Below, piece after piece: positions 7,190 to 57,457 of a DNA stretch of 64,000 nt. Position numbers and translations under genes: made by a program. Origin of the DNA: Macrostomum lignano (lineage: Eukaryota); NCBI GenBank assembly GCA_002269645.1, contig NIVC01000759.1, positions 186,001 to 250,000 of the forward strand, in the 5' to 3' direction. Each line of letters begins with the position of its first letter. Positions within the stretch are counted from its first letter, which is position 1. The notes under the pieces are model-generated. The model did no database searches, was not told the origin of the DNA, and worked only from the letters and a program-made list of their open reading frames with translations.

Positions 7190-9356
7190 CAAAGTATATG
7201 TTTCGAATGGCACCTTTTGGCATCAACTCTATCTCTGAATATTACAACAGGAGACTGGACAGTGTTCTGCAGGGTTTTAAAGATACTCGTGGACGACTGC
7301 ATAGTTGCAAGCGCCGACTACGACAGCCACGTCCAAGCTGTTCGTGAATTTCTTAATCGATGTGACGAGAGCGAAATCGCATTAAATAAGAAGTTTGTCT
7401 TCGCCAAAAAAATGCCAAGGTTGCTGGATTTTTGCTCTCACAGAACAGCTATCAGGTGGACCCAGACATGACAGCAGCCATTGCTCAATTTCCAGAGCCA
7501 CCTAATATTACAGAATTACGTGCATTCATGGGCTTAGTGAATCGGATAGGACCATTCACAGACTCGATCGCGGAATGTACCTCAACGCTAAGACCTCTTC
7601 TAGGCACAAAAAATTCATCCATCTGGAATGAGGAGCACCAAAAGGCCTTCGATAAGGCACGAATCCACCTGTCCAAAGTTCTATCTTTGGCATACTACGA
7701 TCAGATAAAGCGAACAGCATTGCAACAGATGCGTCAAGATTGAAGGGACTCGGAATAGTCCTTAAACGGCAGCAAAAAGATGGCACATGGCTAATGTTAC
7801 AAGTTGGATCTCGATTTCTAGCTGATGCAGAAACGCGATATGCTATGATTGAGCTCGAATTGCTAATAATTGTATGGGCTGCACAAAAGTGTCATCTATT
7901 TTTAGAAGGATTGTTGGCGTCATTTGAAACCGTGACGGATCACAAACCACTTATTCCGATCCTAAATAGCTATCAACTGGACCAAATTGAGAACCCACGG
8001 TTACAGCGCCTTCGCGCCAAGCTTAATCGTTATAACTATGATGCTAGATGGGTTCGAGGTAAAGACAACGAAGACGCCGATGCACTATCAAGGTTCCCCA
8101 TTGCAAATGCGACTGAGGAAGACCAGATTGACGAGAGTCAAGCGGTAAGCAGCGTGAATTTACTTATGATGGCAATAGAAGATACGGAAATTGATGTTAA
8201 CATGAAGAAACTACAAGAACAAGTGAAGAATGATGCAGAAATGCAAGACCTTATCCGAGTTATCGAGAATGGAAATGGATTTCCAAACGACAATGCTAAT
8301 CTGCCAGTTAATCTAAGACCATATTGGCACGCCAGACATAAGCTCGTTGTCGAAGATGGGATCATTCTCAATGGATGTCGATGCATAATTCCTAAAGACA
8401 TACAACGAGAAGTTTTGAGAACTCTGCACGCGAGTCATCAAGGTGCTACTAAAACCAAAGCAAGAGCAAGGATGACAGTCTATTGGCCCGGCATGGAACG
8501 TAAAATAGATGACACAATAAAACAATGCAAGGCATGCCAAGAAAACCGGCCAAGTCAAACCACAGAGTCGATGATGCAGAGAAATCCGCCAGGAAGGTGT
8601 TTCCAGGAAGTTCACGCGGACTTTTGTGAATTTCGCGGCAGGCAATTGCTAGTGATAGTGGATTGCTACTCAGGCTGGATCAACGTCTGGAGTTTCGGAC
8701 AAAACGCTCCGGTTTACAAGCTTATCAATGCATGCCGTGAGCTATTTCGTCAGACAGCCGTACCGGAATCCTTCTGGTCAGACTCAGGCTCTCACTTCAA
8801 AGCCAACGTCTTTGTAAATTTTCTGAAGAGATGGGGAGTTGAGTCCAGATTCTCATCGCCTTACCATCACCAAAGCAATGGAAGGGCTGAATCCGCAGTT
8901 AAGTCTGCCAAGAAGATTATCAGAGGATCTTGGGACTATCGAAACAACGACATAGACAAGGGCAAGATGGCAGAAGGCATTCTGTAGAAGAGTCTTGGCC
9001 GAATCAGAATTGGCTCGACTGTGGTTCTACAAGACCCGACAACCAAACTGTGGCAACGGAGGGGCGTGGTGGTGGAGGTAGGCAAACACCGCGACTACCT
9101 GATCAAGCTAGCTAATGACCGAATACTACGGAGAAATCGTATCTCCGTCCGGCCAACACTACCATGGAACGCCGATTATCTGCAACAGGCGACTAACAAG
9201 CTGGTGGATCAAGAACGTACCAAACGGACAATCAGAGACTTGGGGATCAGAGGCCATCGGAGAGACCTCGCGTTAGCGCCAGGTCGACAAAAAATCCCGC
9301 CAGTTCGGTTTCAGTACAGCCGACTGGGGCAGCCGAAAGTTCAGTTTCTTGAGTAA
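7190..9356 (+). mobile_element. Degenerate Ty3/Gypsy LTR-retrotransposon pol (RT-RNase H-integrase)
   Basis: RT: YMFRMAPFGINSISEYYNRR, LVDDCIV. RNase H: GSRFLADAETRYAMIELELL, VTDHKPL. Integrase: HASHQG...YWPGM...CKAC, VHADF, SDSGSHF, SPYHHQSNGRAESAVK. Several frameshifts and stops. Confidence 0.95.
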
Positions 9357-9588: not shown

Positions 9589-10104
9589 TGTTGTAGAAAT
9601 TGAACAAGTCAAAGGGCCGTTAATTTAGCTAACATGAAAAATAAAAAATTAAGCGCTCACTGAGAGGCCTGCAATACCATATAATATATTTAACTATAAG
9701 TAGTCTCTCGCAACAGCCACCCCACCATGCGCACTGAGGAGGGGGGACGCCAAGCGTACACACAAACCAGAGGGTGCTAGGCAGGCACACAACTAACCCT
9801 AACACTCCCCCTAATGATGCTTCATCATTACAACAGACTTGATAACTAAAAATGAAACGCACCATCACCAGAGTACTAAGTTATCGAAAAAGCAGAAACA
9901 CAAAAGGCGCAAAGCGCAAAAATGTAAACACCGTCACCAGCGTACTGTAAATTAGAGAAAACCAAATGTTGCGTTGAGAAGTGTGCTCACAGAGCACGAG
10001 AACGATAAGCTAGGATAAGAACTTGAAGATTGAAACTAAGGAGAGATAAAGACTGAGAACTCAGATGTCAATCATCACTGTCAGTTTTAGAAAAGTTAAG
10101 AACA
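9589..10104 (-). repeat. BEL 3' LTR (right boundary approximate)
   Basis: The first ~180 bp match 14690-14867, and the segment lies directly after the integrase stop at 10107. Confidence 0.7.
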
Positions 10105-10106
10105 GT

Positions 10107-11158
10107 TCATTCAGTCACGGCTTCTAGCAAAATCAGGTTCTCAACCGGTCGGCGAGTCAAGCATCTCCTGGGTCCGCGGCCTGGCTTTTGCGCGACTCGA
10201 ACTGTTGCCGATCTCACTGCTCCGTCTCGTCCCGGATGCACCGCCTCGATAATGCCAGTACACCAGGTAAGCCTCGGTTGGCCAGCTTCGCCTTTCACCA
10301 GGACGATGTCACCGACCGTCGCCTCTCGGATCACGCCATGCTTGGGATTGAGCCGATGTTCACGCAGGCTGGTCAGATATTGCCGCACCCAGCAGTCCCA
10401 GAAGGTGTGAAGTCTGGCGCGCATTCGCTTAAGCAGTTTTGGCAACGGTAGCAGAAGATCTGGTGCGCAACTAGAAGTAGGCTCCGCTGCCAGCCGCTGC
10501 AACACCAGGAAGTGTGCCGGTGTCAGAACTTCTCCTTCGGGTTCGGCATCCACGTAGAGCAGAGGGCGGCTGTTGAGCACCGCCTCTACTTCCATGAGCA
10601 CAGTCAGCAGTTCATCCAGTGTGAGACTGGAATTTAGGAGGGTCTTGCGCAGTGCCAGTTTTATATCCTTCATCAGTCTCTCCTTGAAGCCTCCTTGCCA
10701 AGGAGCGCGTTCGGTGATGAACTGCCAGGTGATCTTTCGTGTGGCGCAGAACTCTTGGACCTTTTGACTCTCTGATGCTTGCAATATCCGCGCGGCTTTG
10801 GCGAATGTCTTAGCGTTATCGTTGATGAGACTAGGGATACCTCTCCCGCATAGAATCTCCTTAGGGCTCTTAAGAAAGTTTCAGTTGTTAGATCATTCAC
10901 CAGTTCTAGATGAAGCGCTCGCGTTGCTGCGCAGGTGAACACCAAGATGTAGCCCTTCTCGACAGCAGTGTCCTCTATCAGCTTGACCGGACCACAGTAG
11001 TCGAGCCCGCTCCACTCAAACGCTCTCATTGCTTTCACGCGAGATTCTGGCAACGCAGGAACTTGCTTCACAGCGAACGGGAGTCCCTGAAGACGCCTGC
11101 AGACGACGCATTTTCCAAGAATTGCCAGTAGTAGCAAAATGGTACGGTCAGGCCCACG
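10107..11158 (-). pseudogene. BEL/Pao integrase (frameshifted)
   Basis: CVVCRR, SGLDYCGP, FTCAATRALHLELV, WQFITERAPWQGGFKERL, LNSRPL, LTPAHFL, FWDCWVRQYLTSLRE, GDIVLV, GRDGAVRSATV. Confidence 0.92.
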
Positions 11159-11325
11159 TCGCTGATTGGCTGGCCAATCAGCGAGGGGGAGCCAATCAGC
11201 GATGAGGAGGCCCCGGAGGCGGGGCGGGGCAGGCCGGAGGTAGGGGTGGGGCAAGCCCAGTAGTGGGGTCGGGCAGGCCGGATTAGGGGGTCGAGCAAGC
11301 CTAGGAGTGGGGTCGAGAGCAGGCC
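11159..11325. repeat. Left terminal inverted repeat with hairpin, CCAAT repeats and GC box
   Basis: TCGCTGATTGGC-TG-GCCAATCAGCGA (11159-11184), a second GCCAATCAGCG at 11191 and GGGGCGGGGC at 11221. It is the reverse complement of 13817-14040. Confidence 0.9.
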
Positions 11326-11635
11326 CAGGGGTGGGGTCGAGCAGGCCAAGGTGGGGTCGGGCAGGTGGGATGAGGAGTCGAGCAAGCCTAGGGGTGGGGT
11401 CGAGCAGGCCCAGAGGTGGGGAGCAGGCCAGATGAGGGGTCGGGTAGCGAAGTGTCTGGAGTGTCCAAGGGTGAGTTGACTGAGTGTCCAAGATGGGTAT
11501 CGAGATGTGAATGAGTGTCCACTGGTTAGTGTCCTTTACCGCATGTGGTGACATGCAAGACAGAGTTTCAATGTGATCGGTCAACGGGTAGAGGGTCCGA
11601 TTGCTTGTAATTTCCAAGTAGAGAGGGGTAGAGAT

Positions 11636-11792
11636 TCTATTGGTCGAGAAAGCATTTGAAGTGATTTCCCCGGAATTTCCTAGTATAATGTGGGGAAGGG
11701 ATTCTATTGGTTCTAGAATCTAGAGGCCCCTGGTGCACAATTTGATTGGTCAACACACCCCGCGAGAGAAGGGGTCCAGTACCCTTTATAAG
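11636..11792 (+). promoter_or_regulatory. Putative promoter of the PC4-like ORF (three ATTGG boxes and a TATA-like element)
   Basis: ATTGG at 11639, 11706 and 11745; TTTATAA at 11785-11791. Confidence 0.45.
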
Positions 11793-11961
11793 CAAAGCAC
11801 CTTGCGCTCGCTAAGCTTCATGCAATTTTTTAAAACGATTTCTGATGGCGTTCAAAGAGCTACTACATGGTTATCGCATCAGCCTGGTGCCGGACACACG
11901 GACCATCAGTATTAGAAAGTGATTCAAGTCTGGCGAGGATCATCGGCCAGGTCTGCCCGGC

Positions 11962-12468
11962 ATGGAGCTCACCATCCATCAATTCCGATACCTGGCCAGC
12001 TTGAAAGAGCGCTTGGAAGAGTTCGCTGACAGGAAACTCGATGCGCAATGCCTTCTGGGTGGCAACAGGCAAGTGGTGGTCAAAGATGGTGCAATCTCAC
12101 TCTGGCGCCTTCCAACAGTGCTCGGCCCCGTGCTGCACTTGAGACATGCCCTGCCGCTACCAACTGAGCAATGGCGACAGCTGTGGCAACACAGGCAATG
12201 GATATTGGAAGAACTCGAAAGACCCGCCAACCCGTGGTGGCTCGGAAACTACCCCTCGGAGCCCGAAGAGTGCGCGGAGTGGGCGTCGAAACTCTCGATG
12301 GACCAGCTGGCGATGTGGCCAGAGACGCAGCCAGCAGAGTGGGATGACCATTGGGAGGCATGGCAGGCAGTCCAGACCGAGTTCCACAAACGCTATGTGC
12401 CATCAGCGGAGCCCAGCCAGCAAGCTGAAACTCCCACGCCACCAAGGAAGCGCGCGCGCAAGAATTGA
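11962..12468 (+). CDS. PC4/Sub1-like ssDNA-binding domain protein with C-terminal basic NLS
   Basis: LLGGNRQVVVKDGAISLWR...ALPLPTEQWRQLWQHRQWILEEL resembles the PC4 pattern LG..R.V.V...IDIRE...GISL..EQW..L. The protein ends PPRKRARKN. Confidence 0.55.
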   Translation: MELTIHQFRYLASLKERLEEFADRKLDAQCLLGGNRQVVVKDGAISLWRLPTVLGPVLHLRHALPLPTEQWRQLWQHRQWILEELERPANPWWLGNYPSEPEECAEWASKLSMDQLAMWPETQPAEWDDHWEAWQAVQTEFHKRYVPSAEPSQQAETPTPPRKRARKN

Positions 12469-12507
12469 CTTCCTTTTACTGTGCATTTCGGGCCATAATA
12501 CTGCCCA

Positions 12508-12867
12508 TCATGCTTTGATTCCGGGCGATAATACTGTTATGCCGTTGAGGAGCTCAGTCAGAGTCCAGCAAAGTAGGTTCGAATGCTTGTCTGCATGCAA
12601 AATGCGGGAGAGGGCATCAGCTGCAGTCTGAGCCTCAACCACGCTGCAAGCACCAGCTATAATACAACGATACGAATGAAACAAAATCAAATTTACAGAG
12701 GCAGTAAACTCGAACACAAGTCCGTTAAAAATTTCCGGCTCGTAGGTGCCCCGATGCGGCCAGTTACACTTGACTTCCTCCAATCGGAGTGGATGCCGAC
12801 CCGCGGGAAAGGCCGTCACAGAGGTAATAGTCTTGATGCGAATCTTTGGCAGACTGGTCAATCGCAA
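12508..12867 (-). CDS. Single-repeat TATA-binding-protein-like ORF (no in-frame ATG; start possibly frameshifted)
   Basis: HPLRLEEV...TYEPEIFNGLVF...NLILFHSYRCIIAGA...RIL aligns by eye with the TBP repeat FPIRLEGL...SYEPELFPGLIY...LLIFVSGKVVLTGA...PIL. Confidence 0.85.
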   Translation of the reverse strand: MRLTSLPKIRIKTITSVTAFPAGRHPLRLEEVKCNWPHRGTYEPEIFNGLVFEFTASVNLILFHSYRCIIAGACSVVEAQTAADALSRILHADKHSNLLCWTLTELLNGITVLSPGIKA

Positions 12868-12874
12868 GAAGCAT

Positions 12875-13015
12875 TTTTATTGGTCAGCAGACCCGAGTCA
12901 GATATTTTGAGAATCTTGACTTTTGTCCAGATGGTCCGATTTTCGAGTGAGTGGGTTTCTATTGGTTAGAAAACTTTGGTGTCGGTGCAATGAGGCCCAA
13001 AATCTATATAATCAA
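12875..13015. promoter_or_regulatory. Putative bidirectional promoter between the TBP-like and RING ORFs
   Basis: ATTGG/CCAAT at 12879 and 12961, TATATAA at 13005-13011, lying between divergent ORFs. Confidence 0.45.
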
Positions 13016-13086
13016 GGCGCCTGGGCTATTTGAGGCTCAGTTAGTGTACCTTTATGACTATACAAAATTTAAGCTGTTAATTTACC

Positions 13087-13422
13087 ATGGCTCACCAATA
13101 TCAGATAAATCAGATAAAGAAAATTATTCAATGCGGTATTTGCCTGAACGAATGTTCGGATCCACGGGCACTACCTTGCCTGCACACCTTCTGTGCTCAC
13201 TGCATCCATGGCTTGCCGCGAACTCAGCAGATAATGATTAACTGTCCAATGTGTAGGAGGCTTTGCGAACTGTCTGATCCGGCAGCTTTGCCAAAAAGCT
13301 TTTACTTTGAACAGCTTAAGACAGTTGTCGCAACTTTTAACTTACAACCATCGACGTTGCCAGCAAGGGAACATGCTGGTATTGGTCAATCACCAAAATA
13401 TATGGTGGAGATATTAGGGTGA
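13087..13422 (+). CDS. C3HC4 RING finger (TRIM/RNF17-type), N-terminal half of a probable RING-Tudor protein
   Basis: CGICLNECSDPRALPCLHTFCAHC...CPMCR...LPKSF. Confidence 0.9.
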   Translation: MAHQYQINQIKKIIQCGICLNECSDPRALPCLHTFCAHCIHGLPRTQQIMINCPMCRRLCELSDPAALPKSFYFEQLKTVVATFNLQPSTLPAREHAGIGQSPKYMVEILG

Positions 13423-13830
13423 TAGAGATTATCTCCCCTAATCACTTCTACTGCATCCTACCAGAAACTCCGCCAACAGAGTTTCTACCTACGGAACTTT
13501 CGGGTCTGCTCAGTCTAGCAGAATCCCACGAAGTTGGGGTAAAGGAGATGTATGTTGGCCGCTTTTCCCGTGCGCTATGTCACAACGTCGACCGGTATTA
13601 CCGCATGCGGATTCTAAGCATAAATGTGAGCACTAACACTGCCACGGTGCTGCTAGTCGACTATGGTCATATCGATCACTCGAAACCCATGTCTGAGATC
13701 TACCGGCTAAAAGTCCTCGATCCTATCACGGCAATGCTAATGAAAGCACCGGAACGCGCGATACGCTGCCACCTTCGCAGCATTAGCGCCTGCCCGCCGT
13801 GGGCAACTAATGACGCGGCCTGCTCTGGAC
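13419..13830 (+). CDS. Extended Tudor domain; the ORF continues into the right TIR (stop at 13988)
   Basis: VIEIISPNHFYC...DRYYRMRI...ATVLLVDYGH...SEIYRL...PERAIRCHL follows the eTudor pattern. One extra G in TTAGGGTG at ~13417 would fuse it in frame to the RING ORF. Confidence 0.85.
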
Positions 13831-14040
13831 CACTCCTAGGCTTGCTCGACCCCCTAATCCGGCCTGCCCGACCCCACTACTGGGCTTGCCCCACTCCTAC
13901 CTCCGGCCTGCCCGACCCCACTACTGGGCTTGCCCCACCCCTACCTCCGGCCTGCCCCGCCCCGCCTCCGGGGCCTCCTCATCGCTGATTGGCTCCCCCT
14001 CGCTGATTGGCTCCCCCTCGCTGATTGGCCAGCCATCAGT
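13817..14040. repeat. Right terminal inverted repeat of the cassette
   Basis: Three CGCTGATTGGC copies (13983, 14001, 14019) and an imperfect terminal hairpin TCGCTGATTGGC-CA-GCCATCAG. Confidence 0.9.
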
Positions 14041-14606
14041 TCTCGGCTGTGATGTTAAGGCTGGCGATCGAATTTCTTGGCTTCTCCTGAAAGGCATGAT
14101 TGCAGGTAGCTAAACTTGTCGACGACGCTGAGGCTCGCGTTATCGTGGATGCTGGAACTGAAGCGGTCCCAGAATGCAGTCCATTGCGTCCTATCTCCAT
14201 TGAATGCTGGCGGCGGCAGCCTGATGGCCGGCGTAGTCGTCAAAGCAGCATTCTCTTGCGGTGACGTGGATGGAGTTGACTCTTTCGTTTGCTGCTGCTC
14301 TTTAGCCTGTATGCGGCTTTCTCGCTCGACCTGAAGACTCTGCAGTCGCTTGGCGAGACTCGAAATCATCTTCCCAGCCAGCAGCTCGTACTTTATTGTC
14401 TTCTCCACTTCCTCTTGGAGTATTTTCTCGTCGATCTCAACGAACAGCTCTTCATCCGCTACCAGCAGCTGTTGCTTCTTGAGGCGCAGGGCTTCCAGTA
14501 CGCTGTCGATTTCTTCCTCATCAGCCCCTGAGTTGAGCAGGTCTTGGGCTTTCTGGGCCAATTTGGTGACCGTCGATCTCAAAACTCCACACTTTTTGGA
14601 GTCCAT
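14041..14606 (-). pseudogene. BEL/Pao gag N-terminal part (DUF1759-type)
   Basis: LPPPAFNGDRTQWTAFWDRFSSSIHDNASLSVVDKFSYLQSCLSGEAK, continuing after a frameshift as IASLNITAEN up to the cassette junction. Confidence 0.9.
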
Positions 14607-14679
14607 GCTGAACTAATGAGCATTCATTAAGTCACTGTAGCACTATAGAGCCAATACTTCACTTTACTGTGATTTTAGT

Positions 14680-14867
14680 TTGGGCGCCATGTTGTAGAAA
14701 TTGAACAAGTCAGAGGGCTGTCAATTTAGCTAACATGAAAAATCAACAAATAAGCGCTCACTGAGAGGCCTGCAATACCATATATATATTCAACTATAAC
14801 TAGTCTCTCGCAACAACCACCCTACCATGCGCACTGAGGAGGGGGACGCCAAGCGTACACACAAACC
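14680..14867 (-). repeat. BEL 5' LTR (truncated) with primer binding site
   Basis: On the minus strand ...CTACAACA is followed by TGGCGCCCAA (tRNA-Lys-type PBS). Identity with the 3' LTR stops at 14867. Confidence 0.85.
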
Positions 14868-26888: not shown

Positions 26889-27521
26889 CAAGCTGTTGAA
26901 ACCCGCGGATTTTGAACCCGGGGAATTCCAATCCCCGGAACTATTTTTGCATGTATTCTAAAATCTAAAGTCATTCTCAAACAAAAAATTGTTAATAGTT
27001 AGTAGGATAGAAGGTAAACATAAAATGGAGCACATTCGTGTAAAATTAGAATTTGAGGCAAACATTGATCTTGTTGGCTGGCGTGCTGCGCAGAATGTCA
27101 AGCAATGTCTGCCTGACTCTAAAACATGTATTGGCAAACTCTGGCCTCTGCCTCACCCTGCCTCCCTTGGATCCTTTGAAACATCTATCTTCTCTTCTGT
27201 TTCCTCTTTTCTCTCTCGTCCCTCCTCTCTCCTCTCATCTCTTCTCTTTCATCTCACTTATCTCACATATTCTCTCTCTTCTCTCTCTCTACTCTTTTCT
27301 CTCTCCTATCTCCCCCTCTTCTCTCGTCTCTTCCTTCTCCTCTCTATTCTTTCCTCTCTTCTCTCTCGTCTGCTCTCTCATCTCTCATTTCTCCTCTTTT
27401 ATCTTTTCTCATTTTTCACTGCTCTCTACTCTCTCTTCTCTCTCCACTCTTCTCATTCCTCACTCTCCCCTCTCTTAACACTTCCCTCTTCTCTCTACTT
27501 TCTTATCTCTCTTTTCTACTC

Positions 27522-27599
<78 letters not shown>

Positions 27600-29145
27600 C
27601 TTTCCTCTTTCCTCTCTCCCTCTTCTCTCGTCTCTTCCCTCACCTCTCTACTCTCTCGTCTTTGCTCTCTCATCTCTTCTCATTCCTCTCTGCTCTCCTC
27701 TCTCTCTCTCCCTCTCTTCCTTTCTCTCTTATCTCTCCTCTTCCGTCTCTCTTCTCCTCTACTCTTTCCCCTCTCCATTCTCCTCTTTCCTCTCCTCTCT
27801 CCTCACTCACTTCTCTCTCCCCACTCACTTCTCTCTCCCTTTGTCTCTCCTCTCTCCTCTTGTAATCTCTCCTCTGTTCTCTCTACTCTCCCATCTCTCG
27901 TCTGTTCACTCTCGTCTCTGCTCTCTCACCCTCTTTCATTTGTCATCTTTACTGTATCATATTTTCTCTCACCTCTCTCCTCTGTACTCTTTTCTTTTCC
28001 CTCTTTCGACTCCTCACTTTCCTTTCTCTCCTTTCTTCTCTCTCTCTTCTCTTCCTTCTTCTATACTCTCTTCCTCTCTTGTCTCTCCTCCTTTATCTCT
28101 CATTTCTCATCTCTCCTTACACCTCTCTCATCTCTACAACCTTATCTCTTCTCTCTTCCCTTTAATCTCTTATCTCTCCTTTCACCTCTCTACTCTCTGT
28201 TCTCCTCTCTCCTGTCTCCTCTCATCTGCAGCTCTTTGCTCTCTCATCTCTACTCCCTTCTCTCTCCTCTCTACTCGCTCCTCTTATCTCTCTCATGTCG
28301 CTTCTCTTTTCCCCTCTTCTCCCCCCTCTCTCTCTCATCGTCCTCAACCCCTCATCCCTCCTATTATCTTCTATCTTTTCTCTTATCCCCTCTCTCGCCT
28401 CTCCTCTCTTTTCGGATTGTCCATTTCTTCTTTTTTCCACTTACATCTGCCCCTCAGCCATGAGCTGGATTCTTTATCTGGCCTTTAAGTTAAAATTCTG
28501 CCCATCCATGCTTGGAAAGCCAGTTTGTGGGACGTAGTACTCTCATGGTTGCTCTCATGCTTTGATCATGTCATCTTTCTTGCCAATTTGCAGCCCTGAA
28601 AGGAAATTGTGTATCTTTAGCTCCACTGCAGTCTGCATCAGTCTAACAACCAAGGAAATATGCATTTCTTAGGAGGCCATTTAAATTTTAAAGTACTTTT
28701 AACAGAAACTTAAAATTTCCATAGTGTGACTAATTTAGTAGGGTTGTATTGGATTGCAATGCCTTTTCATAAATCTTTCGCTTTTAAAAACCATGCTGGA
28801 TTCCCTTGATTTGCCAATTGCCAATTGACAGAGAATAAGTCAATGAAAAAAATGTGTCAAGTTTAAAGTCAATTGCTTTATGGGGAGCAAAATTTTGGCA
28901 GCTGAAAGTTAGTCAATTTTGAAACCCCTTTTATATATATCTGGACCTCGATAAGGAAAGAGAAGCAGATAGGTGGAAGTTGGGATGGCTATCTTGCTGA
29001 CAAAAAATAGCCTAATTTTAAAAATGCATAGTGCTGTTCAAGATTAACTTTAAGACTCTAAATTTTACATGATTATGTCAAATTAGTTGAAGATTGTCTG
29101 TCAAATTTGAAAATAATCAGTAGAAGTGGAGTGGCCCTATGGAAG
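26889..29145 (+). mobile_element. Interspersed repeat with CT-rich interior (Helentron-associated/DINE-like), copy 1, 3' truncated
   Basis: Starts caagctgttgaaacccgcgg like 54760. The flanks of the CT-rich core are collinear with copy 2. Confidence 0.6.
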
Positions 29146-30110: not shown

Positions 30111-30589
30111 CAGCTCTTTCGACTTGAAATGCATCGTAAGAATGCTAGCAGAAAAACTGACTGGTTGAATTCTGATTCTGAAATAGATTGCATCACAATA
30201 CACTTTATTTATCGTCTGTGTACTGGCTGAATTTGACACTCAATTGAATTGCGTCACAGCTTTGAGTGTGAAATCATAGTGCAGTACTGAATTTATATTA
30301 CGTAACCATATTGTAAACTTTCATAGACACTGGTACTGACTTGCCTAAGAAATTGATTATGTCATAACTGCTTCGTGAGACTTTTTACTCTACCTGACTT
30401 GGTGTGAGTGTTGAATTATATAAGTGGTACAACATCACTGATAACTTCGATGAGAGCTAGCCTAGAGCTGAACAGACCAGACTGCTAATGCAGCGACCTA
30501 GGTTCGAATCTAAGTAGTTTAAAAGTAGTAGTGTAAAATTTTTTATTAAAAGGTTTTATTAAAGGACTAAATAAAAACACTTAGATTAC

Positions 30590-32895
30590 TGCACTCGATA
30601 AGCCAAGGATTATTGCTATTAATAAACCAAGGACTACTGCACTCGATAAACCAAGGACTATTGCTCTTGGCAAACCAAAGATTACTGCACTTGATTAATC
30701 AAGGATTATTGCTATTAATAAACCAAGGATTACGGCACTTGGAAAACCAAGGATTACTGCACTCGATAAACCAAGGACTATTGCTCTTGGCAAACCAAGG
30801 ATTACTGCACTCAAGAAGCCAAGAATTATTGCACTTGGAAAACCAAGGATTAATGCACTCGATAAACCAAGGACTATTGCTCTTGGCAAACCAAGGATTA
30901 CTGCACTCAAGAAGCCAAGGATTATTGCTATTAATAAACCAAGGATTACTGCACTTGGAAAACCAAGGATTACTGCACTCGATAAACCAAGGACTATTGC
31001 TCTTGGCAAACCAAGGATTACTGCACTCAAGAAGCCAAGGATTATTGCACTTGGAAAACCAAGGATTACTGCACTCGATAAACCAAGGACTATTGCACTT
31101 GATAGGCCAAAGATTACTGCGCTTGATAAACCAAGGATTATTGCACTTGATAAACCAAGGATTATTGCACTTGATAAGCCAAGGATTACTGCGCTTGATA
31201 AACCAAGGATTATTGCACTTGATAAACAAAGGATTATTGCACTTGATAAACAAAGGATTATTGCACTTGATAAACAAAGGATTATTGCACTTGATAAACC
31301 AAGGATTATTGCACTTGATAAGCCAAGGATTATTGCACTTGATAAGCCATGGATTATTGCACTTGATAGTAAAGAATGTTGCACTTGATAAGCCAAGGAT
31401 TAATGCACTGGATTATTCAAGGATTATTGATATTAATAAACCAAGGATTACTGCACTTGGAAAACTAAGGATTACTGCACTCGATGAACCAAAGACTATT
31501 GCACTTGATAAACCAAGGATTATTGCACTTGATAGGCCAAGGATTACTACACTTGATAAACCAAGGATTATTGCACTTGATAGGCCAAAGATTACTGCGC
31601 TTGATAAACCAAGGATTATTGCACTTGATAAGCCAAGGATTATTGCACTTGATAAACCAAGGATTATTGCAGTTGATAAGCCAAGGATTATTGCATCTGA
31701 TAAACCAAAGATTATTGCACTTGATAAACCAAGGATTATTGCACTTGATAAACCAAGGATTATTGCACTTGATAGGCCAAAGATTACTGCGCTTGATAAA
31801 CCAAGGATTATTGCACTTGATAAACCAAGGATTATTGCAGTTGATAAGCCAAGGATTATTGCATCTGATAAACCAAGGATTATTGCAGTTGATAAGCCAA
31901 GGATTATTGCATCTGATAAACCAAGGATTATTGCACTTGATAAACCAAGGATTATTGCACTTGATAAACCAATGATTATTGCACTTGATAAACCAAGGAT
32001 TATTGCTCTTGGCAAACCAAGGATTACTGCACTCGATAAGCCAAGGATTATTGCTCTTAATAAACCAAGGATTACTGCACTTGGAAAACTAAGGATTACT
32101 GCACTCGATAAACTAAGGATTATTGCTCTTGGCAAACCAAGGATTATTGCACTTGATAGGCCAAGGATTACTGCACTTGATAAACCAAGGATTATTGCAC
32201 TTGATAAACCAAGGACTATTGCACTTGATAGGCCAAGGATTACTGCGCTTGATAAACCAAGGACTATTGCACTTGATAAACCAAGGATTATTGCAGTTGA
32301 TAAGCCAAGGATTATTGCACTTGATAAACCAAGGATTATTGCACTTGATAAACCAAGGATTATTGCACTTGATAAACCAAGGATTATTGCACTTGATAGG
32401 CCAAGGATTACTGCACTTGATAAACCAAGGATTATTGCACTTGATAGGCCAAAGATTACTGCGCTTGATAAACCAAGGATTATTGCAGTTGATAAGCCAA
32501 GGATTATTGCACTTGATAAACCAAGGATTATTTCACTTGATAAACCAAGGATTATTGCACTTGATAAACAAATATTGCACTTGATAAACCAAGGATTATT
32601 GCACCTGATAAGCCAAGGATTACTGCGCTAGATAAACCAAGGATTATTGCACTTGATAAACCAAGGATTATTGCACTTAATAAACCAAGGATTATTGCAC
32701 TTGATAAACCAAGGATTATTGCACTTGATAAACAAAGGATTATTGCACTTGATAAACCAAGGATTATTGCACTTGATAAGCCAAAGATTACTGCACTTGA
32801 TAAACCAAGGATTATTGCACTTGATAAACCAAGGATTATTGCACTTGATTAATCAAGGATTATTGCTATTAATAAACCAAGGATTATTGCACTAG
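30590..32895. repeat. 24-bp minisatellite, ~95 copies with variant units
   Basis: Unit gataaaccaaggattattgcactt. The long ORFs in several frames come from the repeat. Confidence 0.95.
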
Positions 32896-36806: not shown

Positions 36807-47755
<10,949 letters not shown>

Positions 47756-48231: not shown

Positions 48232-48875
48232 ACAGGGGCCCTGACTTTCTAACCATCAGGCATGTACACTCTGTGCCTCGGGGGGGCCCTGACTTTCTAA
48301 TCATCAGGCATGTACACTCTGTGTCTCGGGGGGGGGGGCCTGACTTTCTAACCATCAGGCATGTACACTCTGTGTCTCGGGGGGGGGCCTGACTTTCTAA
48401 CCATCAGGCATGTACACTCTGTGCCTCAGGGGGGGGCCTGACTTTCTAACCATCAGGCATGTACACTCTGTGTCTCGGGGGGGGGCCTGACTTTCTAATC
48501 ATCGGGCATGTACACTCTGTGTCTCGGGGGGGGGGCCCTGACTTTCTAATCATCGGGCATGTACACTCTGTGTCTCGGGGGGGGGGCCCTGACTTTCTAA
48601 TCATCGGGCATGTACACTCTGTGTCTCGGGGGGGGCCTGACTTTCTAATCATCGGGCATGTACACTCTGTGCCTCGGGGGGGCCTGACTTTCTAATCATC
48701 AGGCATGTACACTCTGTGCCTCGGGGGGGGGGCTGACTTTCTAATCATCAGGCATGTACACTCTGTGCCTCGGGGGGGGCCCTGACTTTCTAATCATCAG
48801 GCATGTACACTCTGTGCCTCGGGGGGGCCTGACTTTCTAATCATCAGGCATGTACACTCTGTGCCTCGGGGGGGG
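48232..48875. repeat. ~45-bp minisatellite with variable G-run
   Basis: cctgactttctaatcatcaggcatgtacactctgtgtctc(G)n; a single inverted relative lies at ~6255-6290. Confidence 0.95.
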
Positions 48876-51243
48876 GGGGGGGGGTGGACCGTCATGAGTG
48901 TGAATTGCACCACAAATGAATGTGTTTTCAAATTGCCGGTTGCTTTCGCAGACTGGGCCGGTGAGGCCGCTGCCGCCTCCCCTCCCTCCTAATGATCGAC
49001 CCAAAAAATTGCGAATTTCCAAAGACTAAATGAAACAGCAAGCAGGTACATGCAAACCAAGCTCGGATGACAGGAGCTCAACTTTAACCACCTCTGGGAC
49101 GTACACGTAGGAGACAAATGCATCCACCTTTTTAATGTTGAGGCAGGGGGCTGGGCGACATTGGTTGTCACACAACCGGCGAGAGGCATTACTCTCCATT
49201 CCACCGACTCCCCTGAGCAGGCACACAAGCGCGCGGATACGTACGCATTCATATGCACCGGCACACTCGCACAGGAGTGTAGCGGCCCTAATTTATTGTT
49301 TGGCATGTACAAAGCGTGTTAATTGTTAAGGAGAGCCAAGCTGAGAATTCGATCTAGTCCCAAAAATTAACTTGACTGCACTTGGAATCGAGCCTGGGCC
49401 GCTGGCACACCAGAGCGCCGCGCTTGACCACTGGGCTGCGGCCCCATCCGATGTGCTTACCGTGAGACTAATTAAGACCAGAAGCCATAACTGCCCAGAA
49501 CACTAGGACTCTGCATGCACAACCCCAGTAGCGGCTCTGCAAGTCACGTGTGCAGAGTGCACATGCGCTGCAAAGCTTGCCTGCATGCATGCCGTTTGGT
49601 AAGGCTGGTGGTGAGTTTGAACAGACGATCGAGTCTCTGATGCGGCTTCTAACGTATCGTGTAGTTGCAAATTCATGCACGAGCTACTGTACACGGTGTA
49701 CATGCATTTCTGACCCCTGAGCATGCACTCAAGGGTTTCTGACCCCATTATAATGTACATCCCATCGTCTGGCCGTCGTCTGCACCAGCGCGCCAGCACT
49801 AAAAGGGGGGCGTCAGCATCAAAGGGATTAATAACGAATAGTCTAAGGTACATATATTCATTTAAAAAAATTTCTTTTGTGTTAATTTACATTACTATAT
49901 ACGAGTTCTTATGACTATAATAGTGCAGAGAGAGATTAGCTAAGAATTTAGAGAATATGACTCAGGTAAGCTCCATAATGTGCTTGCTTTGACAGTCACA
50001 TAATCAGAGTGACCTTTAATTTATTTGATTGTCACATGGGTGACCGCTTGTTTGCTTGTCACATTGATCACACGGTAGTGATCGTTTATTTGACTCTCAC
50101 ATTTATTGTAGATTTGCTTTATTTAGAGACAACAAAGGCTTGGCCACCGGGCGGCCTTGAGCGCCAATATATATTTAGTAATCGATATTGCGTAGGTTGG
50201 AGTTGGGCCTGATAAACAAGAAGCCTGCAAACTGATTGGCTGCAGGGTGACGGGAAAGGCAGTGTACAACTGAGTGTCAGAGAGCTGAGCGGTGTACGAC
50301 CAAAAATAACTGGTCACACGACGATACGAGTGACCGTTTAGTTGACGGTCACATTGCATGGAGGGCCACACGAGTGACCGTTTATTGATGGGGTGGAGGG
50401 TCACACGTGATAGTTTTTTGATGATCAGAAAACAGTGAAACTGTGACCGTGACAATTTCACACGGGTACATGCATGGTGCGATTGCTCGCATAGTGCGAG
50501 AGCCATTCCTGCAGAACTGCTACCAGACTCAAACTTCTGCTCAAAACCCAGTCTCTTTAGCATGATGGGTGGAGATCCAGCTCACCCAGTACAGAAGCTT
50601 CACAGAGCACAGCTGTTGGAACTTCAATGCTGCACAGATTAAAAGAAATAATCGAGTTTGTTGAAAACCAATTTTGCTGGCGCTAATAAACTTCGAGCGG
50701 CTATCAACAATTAATATTCACGCATTTATTATCAATAAATTTAATTGGCATGCAGAGAAATTGTTTCAGCAGGCAGGAACAGAACGCATTGCTGGATACA
50801 CGGGCGGCAGGGGGGCATGCTGCAATGGTTTTGAACAACTATCAAATAAAATAAAATTTGAAAAACGGGCAAAACAAAACCGGATTCAGCGAGCAGAAAT
50901 ACAGTACAGTATGCAGCGAGTCTGCTTCTTCTAGAAGAGGCAAAGAAGCAAGAGAAATAAAAACAAAATCGGTGGAAGCCAGGTTAATAATTCAGAAGAG
51001 AATATTAAAAAACAGCATCCAGTCCGACGCGATAAACAGATTCGCAAAACTGAAATCGGATAAAAAAGGAGGAAGCCGTGACAAGCCAAATTAAACCAGG
51101 CAAAACAGATTCTCTTGGAGGCAATGAAAACAATTGTATAAAAATAGAGATAAAACGCTAGACATGCTACTCATGCGTGTAACAGCGACAATTTTTAATT
51201 ATGTCGTCTAAAACTTTTACGAACTAAGAAATTCATTTTGGTT

Positions 51244-53505
51244 TCAGGACCTGGTTTCGTAGAAGCCGCTCTTGCCGATGTACCGAACCCACTTGATGAC
51301 GTCATGATCCGAGTAGTTCAGCTTGGACTCGAACACCTTCAGGTAGCGGACTTTGAAGCCGGATGGAGCGAAGGGCACCTGCGGGAATTTCAGTGTGAGA
51401 TTCCGATGCAAGTTTGGGATTCACATGCAGCTAATGTACATGGGATTCTAATGTACAGTGTGAGATTCCAGTGCAGCTGATGTAGTGTGGGATTCACATG
51501 CAGCTAATGTACATGGGATTCTAATGTACAGTGTGAGATTCCAGTGCAGCTGATGTAGTGTGGGATTCCAGTGCAGCTAATGTAGTGTGGGATTCCAATG
51601 TAGCTAATGTACAGTGTGGGATTCCAATGTAGCTAATGTACAGTGTGGGATTCCAGTGCAGCTAATGTACAGTGTGGGATTCCAGTGCAGCTAATGTACA
51701 GTGTGGGATTCGAATGCAGCTAATGTACAGTGTGAATTCCAGTGTAGCTAATGTACAGTGTGGGATTCCAGTGTAGTAATGTACAGTGTGGAATTCCAAT
51801 GTAGCTAATGTACAGTGAGGGATTCCAGTGCAGCTAATGTACAGTGAGGGATTCCAGTGTAGCTAATGTACAGTGAGGGATTCCAGTGTAGCTAATGTAC
51901 AGTGAGGGATTCCAGTGTAGCTAATGTACAGTGAGGGATTCCAGTGTAGCTAATGTACAGTGTGGGATTCCAGCAAGCAGTGATCCGACATAGCCACCTC
52001 AAAGTTCATGGAAATGGGCGGCCGGGTCCACTTCTTGGCTTTGTCGGTGGAGCTGAGCATGTCGATCTCGGCGCTCAGCTGCAGCTCCTTCATGCCGCCC
52101 ATCCGCTTGATCTTCCACACGATGGCGTTGTCGGAGGCCTTGTACCTGGCCCGGCCCTTCATGCAAACCACCTGCACTCCGCTGGTGTTCAGCGGGGTGG
52201 GGATTCGAACCTCAACCTTCTGGGCCAGCAGGGATGGCTTGAAGTTGCTCTTGACCACCACCTTGACCTCCATGCCGGACCGGCCGGTCTCGCGCACTAA
52301 CGGGATGACCCGGAACGGCAGGCTGATGTCCTTGGTGGTCCGGTAGGTCATGAGTTCGAACTCGCCGTCCGGCGGGATGAACGAGATGGAGTGCTCGGTG
52401 TCGAACTTGCTGAGCTTCACGCACTGGTGGAACTGGCAGTCGTCGATGGCGATGTGGCCGGACTTGCCCCCGCCGCCTCCCGAGGCTTCGCCAGCGCCGC
52501 CGCCGCGCCTGCTGTCCACCACGACCTTGTCGTTGATGCCGAACTTGCACTCGGGCATGCCGGACAGGTAGGACTTCATTCGGACACGGCCGGACACGTG
52601 GGCGGACAGCACCTGGCCCTGGGGCGACATCAGCAGGTTGACGGACTCGATCACGTCAAGGAACAGCTCGTTGCGCCGGTACTTGATGCCCTCCCGGCGC
52701 CAGGCAATCTGTCCCGTGACCTGCGGGATATTCAATGGTATACGGATGCTTGGGCGGTTGAAATTAATAGACAAAATAGAAGGCTGTCTACGCAACGGAA
52801 CGCTCACTACGTCAATTAAGGTTAGCTGAAGGTTCAAACATTAATATTAATAATTTATGAAGGCTTAGTGAAGTTAGTGAAGGCTCTCTACGTCATTTAG
52901 GAATCTCAACGTTAGACAAGGATCCCTACGTTAACGAAGGTTCCCAAACTTAACTAAGAATGCCTACGTTAAAGACGGCTCCCTTCGCTACGATACCCTA
53001 CAATAAATAGTCGAGGCTCTTTACGTAAATGAAGTCTCCCCCACCCCACCTGATTGGTAATTCTCGTGGTCTCCTCCTTGGTCTGCGCCCTGACGCCCTG
53101 CTGGGTGATGTAGGTCTTCAGCACGCCCGTGTCGGTGTTCTGCGGGTAGCCGTAGTCCAGCAGCTCGTCAAGCAGCTCGTAGATGAGCACAAAGTTATTC
53201 TTGATGTTCTCCTCGTTGATCTTGCCGAAGTAGGACACCATGACTTCGATCATCTTGTAGAGAAACTGGAACACCAGCGATGCGCTGACATTCTTCTTGG
53301 CCACCGCGCACAGCCAGATGTTCGACCGCTTCACGTGGAAGAAGCTGGTGCGGCCGATGCTGCTGACTGGCGACCGCACCTGCTGCCTGGCGTGAATGAC
53401 GTTCACCCTGAAGGCGTCCACCGCCTCGCGACCGATGTCGTCTCGGTAGACCCGCGAGATTAGCACCTCGCCTTTGTGGTTGTAGATGAATAGGCCGCCT
53501 ATCAT
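51244..53505 (-). CDS. AP2M1: AP-2 complex subunit mu, 3 exons, 437 aa
   Basis: Exons 53505-53050, 52720-51998 and 51378-51244: [23 protein letters not shown]...[23 protein letters not shown]...[14 protein letters not shown]...[26 protein letters not shown]...[16 protein letters not shown]. Confidence 0.98.
51400..51970. repeat. 29-bp minisatellite filling AP2M1 intron 2
   Basis: ggattccagtgcagctaatgtacagtgtg is repeated. Confidence 0.95.
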
Positions 53506-54759
53506 GGCTGAGCTGTGTGACACTGCCCTGCTCAGCTGGCAATCAGCTGGTGCATGCATGCAACGGTACTAAATAAATAAATTTTTGTCAACATCCATAA
53601 CAAAGGACAGAATAGCTAAGGGGTTGATATGCTCATATATACGATTGGGAATACCCCAAATAGAGCACTAAGGATATATATATATAACAGGGTGCAGTAG
53701 CTTTGGGGTTAACAAGAATGCAAACAAATTTTATACAAAACTATAGAATCAATAGGCCTACCTATCCAAGGTTTGATATTATATATTTATTGATTTGCTT
53801 GACAATTTATATTGAAATATATTATAACAATCTGGCTATTAAGCATTATTGAAGATTATAAGCATAAAGACATAACAAGACAGGTACTGCAAATATTGTT
53901 GTTGGCTACTAAATATTATCTATAACTAAAATCAAAACTCAATAGAAGGGAAAGTTACATTATTTTATAATATATTTACTGAAGTTAATGTTTTAGAAAA
54001 TAAAAAGATTTATATATTATCTAAACAAAACTAGAGGCTATAGTAGGCTTAAACCTATATGAATAAAACCTTTATATAAAAGAAATATATTGTATAACAA
54101 GTAGCCTTGTAAAATATTATGATAAAGTGACCAAATATTGAAATACCTAGAACTTAGCTACTTAATACTTTGATATCATATCAACTAATCAGTGAAATGG
54201 TAAATGACAATGCATTGCAACACAGATTAGTACATATGGTAATGCATACAAAACTATTAAAAAATTTAGATACTTTATCTTCCTATTAAAACAATATAAC
54301 CACCAATAAAATGGCTACTCGTCTTAAATATAATTTTTTTTTAAAAATTCAAACACTAATACAAATTTTATATACAATCTTTATACTTTAATTTACTTAC
54401 AATTGACATGCTTAGTAGATGACAAAATGACTCCCTTAAATTAGTATATACAAATTAAGATGGCAAAATGACTAGAACCAAAGTGGGATCATAGATACCA
54501 TATTAAATGACAAAATGACTCCCTGTTATTGTATATTGATTAAGATAACAAAGTGACTAGAACCAAGAAGGAGTCATAGATATCCTATTAAGTAACAAAA
54601 TAGATTATAATGACAAAATAGCAGATAATAAAATGATTAAGAACTACATAAATACTAAGGGTTAGACAAATCATATTTTAGAGATTTTTTAAATTTGATT
54701 GAGATTTGAGATTAGGTTTAATTAACATTTGTAGGCCTATTTACACTATTTTATCTATT

Positions 54760-57457
<2,698 letters not shown>

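Follow-up and report, generated by a model that had tools for sequence, protein, structure and literature searches.

The 64-kb stretch of DNA analysed here (the window) contains a 2.9-kb unit that is bounded by inverted repeats, carries the remains of a PC4-like, a TBP-like and a RING-Tudor gene, and sits within a BEL/Pao LTR retrotransposon rather than in unique host DNA (Table 1). The unit is present once in the window. Public assemblies searched for an exact copy of the window's RING ORF yielded none, and no match in the protein searches reached 100% identity. An earlier note made from the letters of this DNA had described four intronless ORFs; there are in fact three genes, because the RING and Tudor ORFs belong to a single frameshifted gene, and none of the three is intact. 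Relative to intact relatives, the PC4-like gene is interrupted by a stop, the TBP gene has lost its 5' part, and the RING-Tudor gene has both a frameshift and a loss at its 3' end. The note was right about the 39 bp separating the convergent stop codons and about the absence of a transposase, which was found neither in the unit nor in the rest of the window. The same is true of polymerase and capsid genes, and a TBLASTN search of the 64-kb window with 24 polymerase relatives gave no match. Within the unit, Pfam detected no rve-type integrase (the integrase pieces in the flanking DNA are those of BEL/Pao), and there is no gene for a double jelly-roll major capsid protein, a penton, a packaging ATPase or an adenain-like protease. 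No RNA family was found in an Rfam search of the window, and a scan for bacterial-type promoters and terminators, which is not relevant here, was empty.

Table 1. Features of the unit and of the retrotransposon sequences on its two sides (positions in the window).
Feature	Position	Strand	Remarks
Left flank: 3' part of BEL/Pao LTR retrotransposon	9589..11158	-	Integrase C-terminal part (DUF5641, rve_3) 10110-11158; LTR 9589-9768
Left terminal inverted repeat	11159..11447	.	Tip palindrome 11159-11184; 18-nt CCAAT-box units 11173-11209; GC-rich 22/44-nt tandem units 11204-11444
Upstream region of PC4-like gene	11448..11844	+	Repeated short words, three inverted CCAAT boxes, TATAAG
PC4-like gene, one in-frame stop	11845..12468	+	Two tandem beta4-alpha halves, predicted PC4/Sub1/Pur-alpha-type nucleic-acid-binding fold
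Spacer between convergent stop codons	12469..12507	.	39 bp
TBP-like gene remnant, 5'-truncated	12508..12870	-	Second TBP repeat only; frame without ATG
Upstream region of RING-Tudor gene	12871..13086	+	ATTGG at 12879 and 12961; TATATAA 13005-13011
RING-Tudor gene remnant	13087..13815	+	One frameshift; about 70 codons lost at 3' end
RING domain	13129-13260	+	Part of RING-Tudor gene
Tudor domain	13425-13775	+	Part of RING-Tudor gene
Right terminal inverted repeat	13816..14040	.	GC-rich 22/44-nt units 13830-13971; three 18-nt CCAAT-box units 13982-14029; tip degenerate
Right flank: 5' part of same BEL/Pao element	14041..14867	-	gag fragment 14058-14606; LTR 14690-14867

The inverted repeats at the ends of the unit are genuine and far beyond chance level, so the description of the unit as bounded by inverted repeats stands. 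The best pair of arms (11173-11315 and 13869-14011) shows 94% identity over 143 nt, the tips pair at 95% over 43 nt (11167-11209 and 13993-14035), and gapped BLASTN gives 88% over 186-188 nt. When gaps are allowed, these repeats, which are also a defining trait of Polintons/Mavericks, extend to about 190-290 nt, the right one being shorter than the left. Both consist of 18-nt CCAAT-box units together with GC-rich 22/44-nt units. The exact word CGCTGATTGGC is found six times in the 64-kb window (1.2 expected), with every copy at the two ends, and the 9-mer GTGGGGTCG occurs seven times (0.3 expected), all within the two repeats, a count matched by none of 100 shuffles. CCAAT/ATTGG words number 17 in the unit, by raw count about twice the density of the whole window. 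Arrays of CCAAT units together with the conserved GC-rich word form a terminal-repeat signature that annotators can use.

The left tip is a 26-nt palindrome with an 11-bp stem (-12.9 kcal/mol; z = -5.3 in folding against shuffles), which is nothing more than two inverted CCAAT units, and the right tip folds no better than shuffles (z = 0.27). The term "hairpin-ended" in the earlier note is therefore weakly justified at the left tip and fails at the right one, and the ends are not hairpins of the parvovirus type. The left-tip palindrome and a very distant polymerase match (24% identity), named PolB of a "monodnaparvovirus", could be cited for a hairpin-ended element resembling parvoviruses or bidnaviruses, but this is extremely improbable: the palindrome is short and confined to one end, no Rep/NS1 or parvoviral capsid gene occurs in the unit, and TATA promoters and tandem-array repeats are unlike parvoviral telomeres.

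Upstream of the PC4-like gene are short repeated words (11625-11644 and 11692-11711), ATTGG (inverted CCAAT) boxes at 11639, 11706 and 11745, and TATAAG at 11787-11792, a motif layout suggestive of a putative Pol II promoter. An alternative genetic code was rejected as the explanation of the single in-frame stop, because neighbouring reading frames end at the same codon. Beyond its two halves, the protein has a conserved Trp-rich C-terminal region and then a basic tail. The PC4-like assignment of the earlier note holds at the level of the fold and by family profile, but not by Pfam, in which the window protein has no PC4 match (PF02229); its relative P0004 scores 17.6 bits (E = 0.0027), under the 25-bit cut-off. 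The profile of the family, in which six relatives show 42-54% identity, was compared with the PDB, and all of the top six matches are Sub1/PC4 (best E = 0.012). An AlphaFold model (pLDDT 78) predicts two halves per chain, each with the beta4-alpha fold of ssDNA-binding proteins, a topology described for PC4-like domains (PMC7549692). In a Foldseek search with this model, the top five matches are MoSub1 (probability 1.00, TM 0.66-0.70 on the target, rmsd 2.1-2.3 Å, 66 columns), followed by MRP1/2 and Pur-alpha. Metagenome contigs scanned with the PC4-like profile yielded a single true relative (L008); two other candidates (L009 and L010) were rejected as bacterial RND-transporter loci with a chance match to a short peptide.

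The TBP-like assignment is confirmed by a Pfam score of 32.1 bits (PF00352, cut-off 22.9) and by the match of the family profile with solved TBPs (E = 5e-12). Intact relatives have 193-199 aa and two TBP repeats, both of which are present in P0001 and P0002, and share 60-63% identity with the window remnant. The remnant aligns with them from about residue 100 onward only and covers profile positions 98-192 of 194, so that it retains one repeat of the two-repeat saddle. An ORF upstream of TBP in two of the related contigs (L001 and L003) has no Pfam match and no counterpart in other loci.

Pfam also bears out the RING and Tudor domains of the third gene (RING families up to 30.8 bits; TUDOR 26.1 bits, cut-off 23). 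These are parts of a single gene split by one frameshift, as the intact relative P0036 is one ORF of 293 aa, with which the window shows 51% identity in the RING (residues 3-81) and 41% in the Tudor domain (residues 90-222). A short intron joining the two domains was rejected, because the sole GT...AG candidate seen by eye leaves the frame unchanged and the P0036 ORF is uninterrupted. The open frame of the gene continues into the right terminal repeat. A specific kinship with the piRNA-pathway proteins named in the earlier note is not supported. RNF17/TDRD4 and Qin/Kumo have the same domain order, a RING and then an extended-type Tudor (PF00567), but they exceed 1,000 aa and have several Tudors, whereas the relative here has 293 aa and one Tudor; moreover, its RING is closest to TRIM2/3/56. 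The canonical methyl-arginine cage appears incomplete in the alignment of three family members, from which the cage residues were read (the predicted structure of a relative has a pLDDT of 35): H, M or Y stands at the Asn position, and Leu at one of the aromatic positions. The family has only weak matches among solved Tudor domains, and the other Tudor matches in a representative search are mostly long multi-Tudor proteins. The RING-Tudor gene is joined to the element solely through its position in this window.

Intact relatives of the window genes occur in metagenome and SRA contigs, and dN/dS ratios of 0.13-0.34 show them to be under purifying selection. The contigs are short (0.9-6.2 kb), and the links that they provide among accessory genes, repeats and polymerase are pairwise. 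L004 encodes a 1,269-aa PF03175 polymerase (protein-primed DNA polymerase) after its PC4-like gene; in L005, the PC4-like gene faces the C-terminal end of a polymerase 73% identical to that of L004, and its orientation towards the polymerase differs between the two contigs. An Endonuclease VII/HNH-type motif is present in the polymerases of this lineage, a difference from Mavericks/Polintons and adintoviruses, and the polymerase of L004 has no sequence match in the PDB. They show 39% identity with L014, which was recovered from the sample that also gave the TBP contig L001, and 33-34% with L013 and several genes of the sea slug Elysia crispata, in whose genome the polymerase relatives are multicopy. 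In L013, the neighbours of the polymerase are an rve integrase and a protein whose major-capsid (Capsid_N) match is weak (E = 0.0014, under the cut-off). Profile searches found neither PC4-like nor TBP genes in the polymerase loci L012-L014, and no contig among those found bears all three accessory genes together with the repeats and the polymerase. Scans of a viral contig collection with TBP, PC4-like, polymerase and Tudor queries yielded no relatives.

The gene order of the left part of the unit recurs in another contig. L006 bears, in order, GC-rich tandem repeats, CCAAT boxes and a TATA, the PC4-like gene, and a convergent TBP 3' end that is 85-89% identical to L003. In this contig GTGGGGTCG occurs six times with a 30-nt period and points the same way with respect to the gene as in the window, and it occurs in none of 14 other loci. 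Minisatellites are abundant throughout the 64-kb window, which might suggest that the locus is no mobile element and reflects a host retrogene cluster or an assembly chimera between inverted minisatellite arrays. We consider this highly improbable, because the repeat word and the gene order are found again in an unrelated contig from a metagenome, whose protein is only 47% identical, the relatives are linked to a protein-primed polymerase, and the inverted arms are in register across 143 nt.

Because PC4-like relatives adjoin a polymerase, and this polymerase is 33-34% identical to the integrase-adjoining and multicopy sea slug polymerases, the unit probably derives, by internal deletion and decay, from a polymerase-carrying element that resembled Mavericks/Polintons or adintoviruses (MELD type). 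The earlier note had offered a virus-like or satellite element, or else what deletion had left of the core of a larger element. The polymerase-linked relatives and the truncated or interrupted genes favour this last option; as it stands, the unit is not a working element.

The site of insertion bears on how the unit arrived. Its flanks are non-contiguous parts of the BEL/Pao element: the gag fragment on the right covers only profile positions 1-44 of 148 of DUF1759, and the part encoding protease, RT and RNase H is absent precisely where the unit lies. We found no target-site duplication, as no word of at least 5 nt is shared within 40 nt of either end, and the 5-6-bp duplication of Polintons/Mavericks is thus absent. 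With the middle of BEL/Pao lost and no target-site duplication present, end-joining capture of a defective linear genome would fit better than clean integrase-mediated insertion, and the locus is a case of virus-like insertion with loss, and without duplication, of the target. The two LTRs are 93% identical and the terminal repeats of the unit have diverged about equally, which marks this copy as old.

The same junctions, at which several kb of the retrotransposon are gone and no duplication was made, would be expected if the unit were an endogenised piece of an exogenous midsize linear dsDNA virus that lacked an integrase and resembled adenoviruses rather than Polintons, and whose defective genome with both ends was captured once by end joining where a chromosome had broken. 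MELD viruses of animals that have no integrase have been reported (PMC8502044), and neither an integrase nor a capsid gene has so far been found in contigs of the PC4-like/TBP lineage, the closest of which are too short to establish that an integrase is absent. However, the nearest polymerase relative with context (L013) adjoins an rve integrase, and the polymerase relatives are multicopy in a mollusc genome, as is typical of integrating Mavericks; an origin from such a virus is therefore conceivable and rather unlikely.

Non-autonomous DNA elements and defective linear viral genomes usually take the form of deleted derivatives in which both ends are retained. The unit could accordingly be read as a non-autonomous satellite, or "mini" element, which full-length relatives still copy and move in trans and whose genes would be its own helpers. 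Both of its terminal repeats are kept with 88-94% identity, and L006 may be a second short derivative that keeps a terminus and the PC4-like gene. This is nevertheless quite unlikely, given that all three genes are broken, the right tip has lost the palindrome, the copy is old by comparison with the LTRs, and it is single in 64 kb with no target-site duplication.

Under the preferred reading, a deleted derivative, the parent would have been a midsize eukaryotic linear dsDNA ("MELD") element of the Maverick/Polinton or adintovirus type, from which both terminal inverted repeats and pieces of three accessory genes survive. Its terminal repeats, with arrays of CCAAT units at the tips and the GC-rich word further inside, may have been replication origins and protein-binding ends. 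Host RNA polymerase II would have read every gene from its own CCAAT and TATA promoter, and the two-repeat TBP encoded by the element may have favoured those TATA promoters. The PC4-like protein would have bound single-stranded or melted DNA, as a helper of strand-displacement replication or as a transcription co-activator; a DNA-binding role is proposed because of the double beta4-alpha fold, the basic nuclear-type tail, and the position of the gene, which is always beside a terminus or the polymerase. The protein with a TRIM-like RING and a single Tudor domain may have acted as an E3 ligase against a host target. At least two internal deletions would have taken out all that lay from the middle of the TBP gene to the RING promoter and from the Tudor domain to the inner right repeat, and the remainder carries one stop and one frameshift. 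The copy in the window is a fossil that probably has no function today.

More tentatively, this may be the fossil of an undescribed animal lineage, probably spiralian (flatworm or mollusc), of Maverick/adintovirus-like viruses that would bring basal transcription and replication helpers of their own, namely a two-repeat TBP and a double PC4-like DNA-binding protein placed at the genome terminus, as well as a TRIM-like RING-Tudor ubiquitin ligase directed against a host pathway, in which short derivatives retaining both ends (the window unit and L006) would be recurrent defective or satellite forms. The locus serves as a pointer, as it connects three gene families that would otherwise be anonymous with each other and with a protein-primed polymerase. 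If the link holds, some invertebrate Maverick/adintovirus-like elements encode their own TATA-binding protein and PC4-like DNA-binding protein, which gives them an independence in transcription that is otherwise linked with much larger DNA viruses, as well as a putative RING-Tudor ligase.

PC4/Sub1 and the wider family of Pur-alpha, Whirly and MRP1/2 (PMC7549692) share a beta-beta-beta-beta-alpha unit with the PC4-like protein, in which the unit is predicted to be doubled in one chain, and the top structural matches of the model are Sub1-ssDNA complexes. PC4/Sub1 is a homodimer, whereas the two halves here belong to a single polypeptide. The PC4-like protein also differs from PC4/Sub1 in its extra conserved Trp-rich C-terminal domain, in its score under the Pfam PC4 threshold, and in having a replication gene as neighbour. 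Given these differences, a role in transcription is no better backed than one in replication through ssDNA binding.

Polintons/Mavericks are defined by an encoded protein-primed PolB and a retrovirus-like integrase (PMC5499653), and they and the adintoviruses combine PolB and an rve integrase with terminal inverted repeats and double jelly-roll capsid genes. With these elements the unit has in common terminal inverted repeats of a few hundred bp, and PC4-like relatives that adjoin a PF03175 polymerase 33-34% identical to an integrase-adjoining one; in contrast, genes for a polymerase, integrase, capsid, ATPase or protease are missing from it, as is a target duplication of 5-6 bp. TBP is listed among the genes of MELD viruses with an adintovirus-like PolB (Starrett et al. 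2021, PMC8502044, Figure 5 legend), where the TBP-bearing examples come under non-animal datasets; compared by description, these viruses show the same trait, a TBP homologue together with a protein-primed polymerase in a midsize linear dsDNA. Searches with the TBP of the window brought up no named relative. The claim of the earlier note that no described family has this gene set is therefore true in part: the backbone is known and TBP has a precedent, but we found no description in the literature of a Polinton or adintovirus with PC4-like and RING-Tudor accessory genes, and the accessory gene set of the lineage looks new.

Similarly to non-autonomous DNA transposons and defective genomes of linear dsDNA viruses, the unit has kept its termini, has lost the genes for replication and integration, and is a small fraction of the plausible length of its parent. 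Multiplicity is the hallmark of successful non-autonomous elements, whereas the unit is known from one mutationally decayed copy in 64 kb. The inverted terminal repeats of adenoviruses are the ends of a protein-primed linear replicon and carry sites for ubiquitous host factors. The type and spacing of these sites differ from those of the CCAAT-unit arrays, but the ends of the unit likewise carry words that resemble binding sites, which by analogy may be putative sites of this kind.

The inverted repeats that bound the 2.9-kb unit (11159-14040) are real, as the earlier note had claimed (see the table). Beyond the arms reported by the repeat finder, the match extends to 186-188 nt at 88% in a gapped blastn alignment. 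The outer end of each repeat consists of 18-nt tandem units with one CCAAT box per unit; the left repeat has 2.1 copies and the right one 2.7. As an exact word, CGCTGATTGGC is found six times in the window, always at the two ends of the unit (1.2 expected), and the 9-mer GTGGGGTCG is found seven times in the 64 kb, always within the two repeats (0.3 expected; no shuffle reaches 7). Paired arms, tandem units and end-restricted words together establish the terminal repeats. The description of the unit as hairpin-ended is only weakly true: the left tip carries a 26-nt palindrome of two inverted CCAAT units, which as single-stranded DNA forms a stem of 11 bp (z = -5.3, -12.9 kcal/mol), whereas the right tip folds no better than shuffles (z = 0.27). 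No second copy of the unit is present in the window, so that it is single-copy within these 64 kb.

Features of the unit, its insertion site and the remaining window (window coordinates)
Feature	Position	Strand	Description
Inverted-repeat arms	11173-11315 / 13869-14011		143 nt, 94% complementary (repeat finder)
Tip arms	11167-11209 / 13993-14035		43 nt, 95% (repeat finder)
GC-rich 22/44-nt tandem units	11204-11444 and 13830-13971		inner part of repeats
BEL/Pao LTRs	9589-9768 and 14690-14867	minus	93% identical over about 180 nt
BEL/Pao integrase C-terminal part	abuts left repeat	minus	DUF5641
BEL/Pao gag fragment	abuts right repeat	minus	DUF1759, profile positions 1-44 of 148 only
Ty3/gypsy-type pol fragment	7740-8984		open frame
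RNase H ORF with flanking arrays	38915-41470		433 aa; RNase H domain 39217-40515; arrays 38915-39202, 41101-41470
Adaptor-complex medium subunit gene	51953-53559	minus	two neighbouring ORFs
Large satellite/minisatellite arrays	27191-28336, 30584-32893, 41949-43016, 43402-43892, 45331-46500, 48235-48876, 55067-56043

The genes within the unit were identified at different levels. The TBP-like frame is matched by Pfam TBP (32.1 bits; cut-off 22.9), which bears out its earlier identification. It has no ATG. Its relatives P0001 (199 aa) and P0002 (193 aa), 63% and 60% identical to the window remnant, each have two TBP repeats, and the frame aligns with the second of these alone; the window TBP gene has therefore lost its 5' half. 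The PC4-like frame, read from an upstream ATG (11845-12468), contains one in-frame stop. Pfam gives no match for this ORF, and the PC4-like call holds at the fold level. The gene has six relatives at 42-54% identity, one of which has a Pfam PC4 match below threshold (E = 0.0027), and a profile of the relatives searched against the PDB has solely Sub1/PC4 as top matches (best E = 0.012). The AlphaFold model of one relative, P0004 (pLDDT 78), has two beta4-alpha halves, the topology of the PC4-like fold (reviewed in PMC7549692). Foldseek ranks Magnaporthe Sub1 structures in its first five places (probability 1.00, target-normalized TM 0.66-0.70, rmsd 2.1-2.3 A), followed by MRP1/2 and Pur-alpha. 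A short word around ATAATACT repeats just 3' of the PC4-like stop codon (window 12480-12540; contigs L006 1640-1660 and L003 1175-1195). Spotted by eye, without statistics, it has two occurrences in the window and one in the L006/L003 lineage, and is possibly a 3'-end signal common to them.

In Pfam the window matches TUDOR (26.1 bits; cut-off 23) as well as several RING families, and both identifications are thus confirmed. RING and Tudor had been taken for separate ORFs, but an exhaustive search with the Tudor part recovered P0036, a 293-aa protein encoded by a single ORF, which is 51% identical to the RING piece (P0036 residues 3-81) and 41% identical to the Tudor piece (residues 90-222). 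The two pieces are therefore one gene split by one frameshift in the window copy. Some 70 codons are missing from the 3' end of this copy, whose open frame continues directly into the right repeat; that this repeat is the shorter one fits a deletion that took its inner units as well. The RING is of the TRIM type (TRIM2/3/56 closest, E = 9e-12). By alignment, the one Tudor domain appears to have lost the canonical Asn, with one aromatic of the methyl-arginine cage replaced in all three family members. A direct PIWI/piRNA-pathway role is therefore possible but unsupported. Among named Tudor relatives, the nearest comes from the flatworm Macrostomum lignano.

With one stop in the PC4-like gene, one 5' truncation in the TBP gene, and one frameshift and one 3' truncation in the RING-Tudor gene, all genes of the unit are broken. 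No polymerase, integrase or capsid relative was found anywhere in the window. The observation in the earlier note is correct for the most part. The locus is a fossil: the suggestion of a working mini-element fails, and it is the alternative offered with it, the deleted core of a larger element, that the evidence supports.

On either side of the unit lies a part of one and the same minus-strand BEL/Pao LTR retrotransposon (9589-14867). The two parts are not adjacent in that element: its protease, RT and RNase H region is absent precisely at the position of the unit. No direct repeat of at least 5 nt flanks the unit ends, and the gag and integrase fragments abut it without target duplication. 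Because target duplication is absent and target sequence was lost, entry by end-joining capture is favoured over clean integrase action at this single locus. The decay of the unit and a repeat divergence similar to that of the BEL/Pao LTRs indicate that the copy is old.

Elsewhere the window contains fragments of other retroelements, numerous minisatellites and a gene for an adaptor-complex mu subunit. A Ty3/gypsy-type pol fragment lies just upstream of the BEL/Pao element; its open frame has RT-RNase H, integrase zinc-binding and rve core domains. An ORF with an RNase H domain is flanked on both sides by arrays of one and the same 76/149-nt tandem unit, possibly the ends of another retroelement. 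The large arrays comprise TC/CT-rich kilobase tracts, a 24-nt unit (x96), a 22-nt unit (x54), a 49-nt unit (x13) and a 12-nt unit of tandem CAGT (about 41 copies, 491 nt), and they explain why the composition profile shows blocks of extreme strand skew. The two ORFs matching Adap_comp_sub (E = 6e-74) and Clat_adaptor_s belong to an ordinary host gene and are separated by a short intron. Rfam finds no RNA family in the window.

Relatives of the unit's genes link it to a DNA polymerase. In the 6.2-kb JGI contig L004, a 1,269-aa protein with PF03175, which denotes family-B polymerases of the protein-primed type, is encoded next after the PC4-like gene and on its strand. In L005 it is the C-terminal part of a polymerase that the PC4-like gene faces. 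Despite 73% identity between the two polymerase C-termini, the arrangement is thus tandem in L004 and convergent in L005, and therefore either the gene order at the terminus is not fixed or the contigs show opposite ends. The L004 polymerase shares 39% identity with its counterpart in L014, a contig from the same sample as the TBP contig L001, 33-34% with several genes of the sea slug Elysia crispata and with the L013 polymerase, and 24% with a PolB named for 'monodnaparvovirus'. Beside the L013 polymerase lie an rve integrase and a protein that weakly matches a major capsid protein. Neither a PC4-like nor a TBP gene is found in the polymerase contigs L012-L014, and both are therefore lineage-specific accessory genes. 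Just before the polymerase domain, an Endonuclease VII/HNH-type motif (Pfam PF02945) was seen in the polymerases of L004 (2069-5878; E = 1.2e-4, 22.3 bits, just under the cut-off of 23.6) and L014 (1601-5053; E = 1.3e-5, 25.4 bits).

The terminal organization recurs in a relative. Contig L006 begins with GC-rich 30-nt tandem repeats that include six occurrences of GTGGGGTCG, oriented towards the gene as they are in the window; the word is absent from the 14 other loci. The repeats are followed by CCAAT boxes and a TATA box, the PC4-like gene and a convergent TBP 3' end, which is 85-89% identical to that of L003, a contig from the same sample. Terminus, PC4-like gene and convergent TBP gene, in this order, are therefore the ancestral arrangement rather than an accident of the window. 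In L006 (1997-2268) the TBP 3' untranslated end is retained with a (TG)n tract in place of the coding part, which is either a second truncated derivative or a microsatellite assembly artefact. An open frame upstream of TBP, with 85% amino-acid identity between L001 (1-222) and L003 (2-307), overlaps the TBP promoter and start; it has no Pfam match and nothing similar in other loci, and is probably the end of an adjoining element gene. Two samples, ERZ27315222 and ERZ27315224, each hold two of the three gene families. The relatives are under purifying selection (dN/dS 0.14 for TBP and 0.13-0.34 for PC4-like; rough values, as dS is mostly saturated). This family picture is built on short contigs and pairwise links. 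TBP, PC4-like, polymerase and Tudor queries found no relative in a viral contig collection, nor did the L004 polymerase match anything in the PDB; two metagenome-scan matches to the PC4-like profile (L009 and L010) were rejected as false positives from bacterial RND-transporter loci.

The parent was most likely a linear Maverick/Polinton- or adintovirus-like element with its terminal repeats as replication origins. CCAAT boxes and a TATA box lie upstream of each gene, in the window and in relatives, and these are promoters that an element-encoded TBP would plausibly have favoured. The PC4-like protein, whose gene adjoins the terminus or the polymerase and which has a basic C-terminal tail, is as likely to have been a single-strand-binding helper of strand-displacement replication as a transcription co-activator. 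The window copy has both ends and none of the machinery, and in this it resembles a defective genome or a non-autonomous derivative.

Polintons are defined by two genes, for a protein-primed polymerase and for a retrovirus-like integrase (PMC5499653). The window unit has neither and therefore does not qualify as a Polinton itself, though it is probably derived from one. The earlier note knew of no described family with this gene set. TBP does appear on the list of genes of midsize eukaryotic linear dsDNA (MELD) viruses with an adintovirus-like PolB (PMC8502044, Figure 5 legend). No mention of PC4-like or Tudor genes was found in the adintovirus paper, nor of TBP, PC4 or Tudor in the 2024 survey of double jelly-roll viruses, and literature searches on Maverick/Polinton with TBP, Tudor or Macrostomum turned up nothing specific. 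What is new against these known elements is the set of accessory genes carried by the unit's parent lineage.
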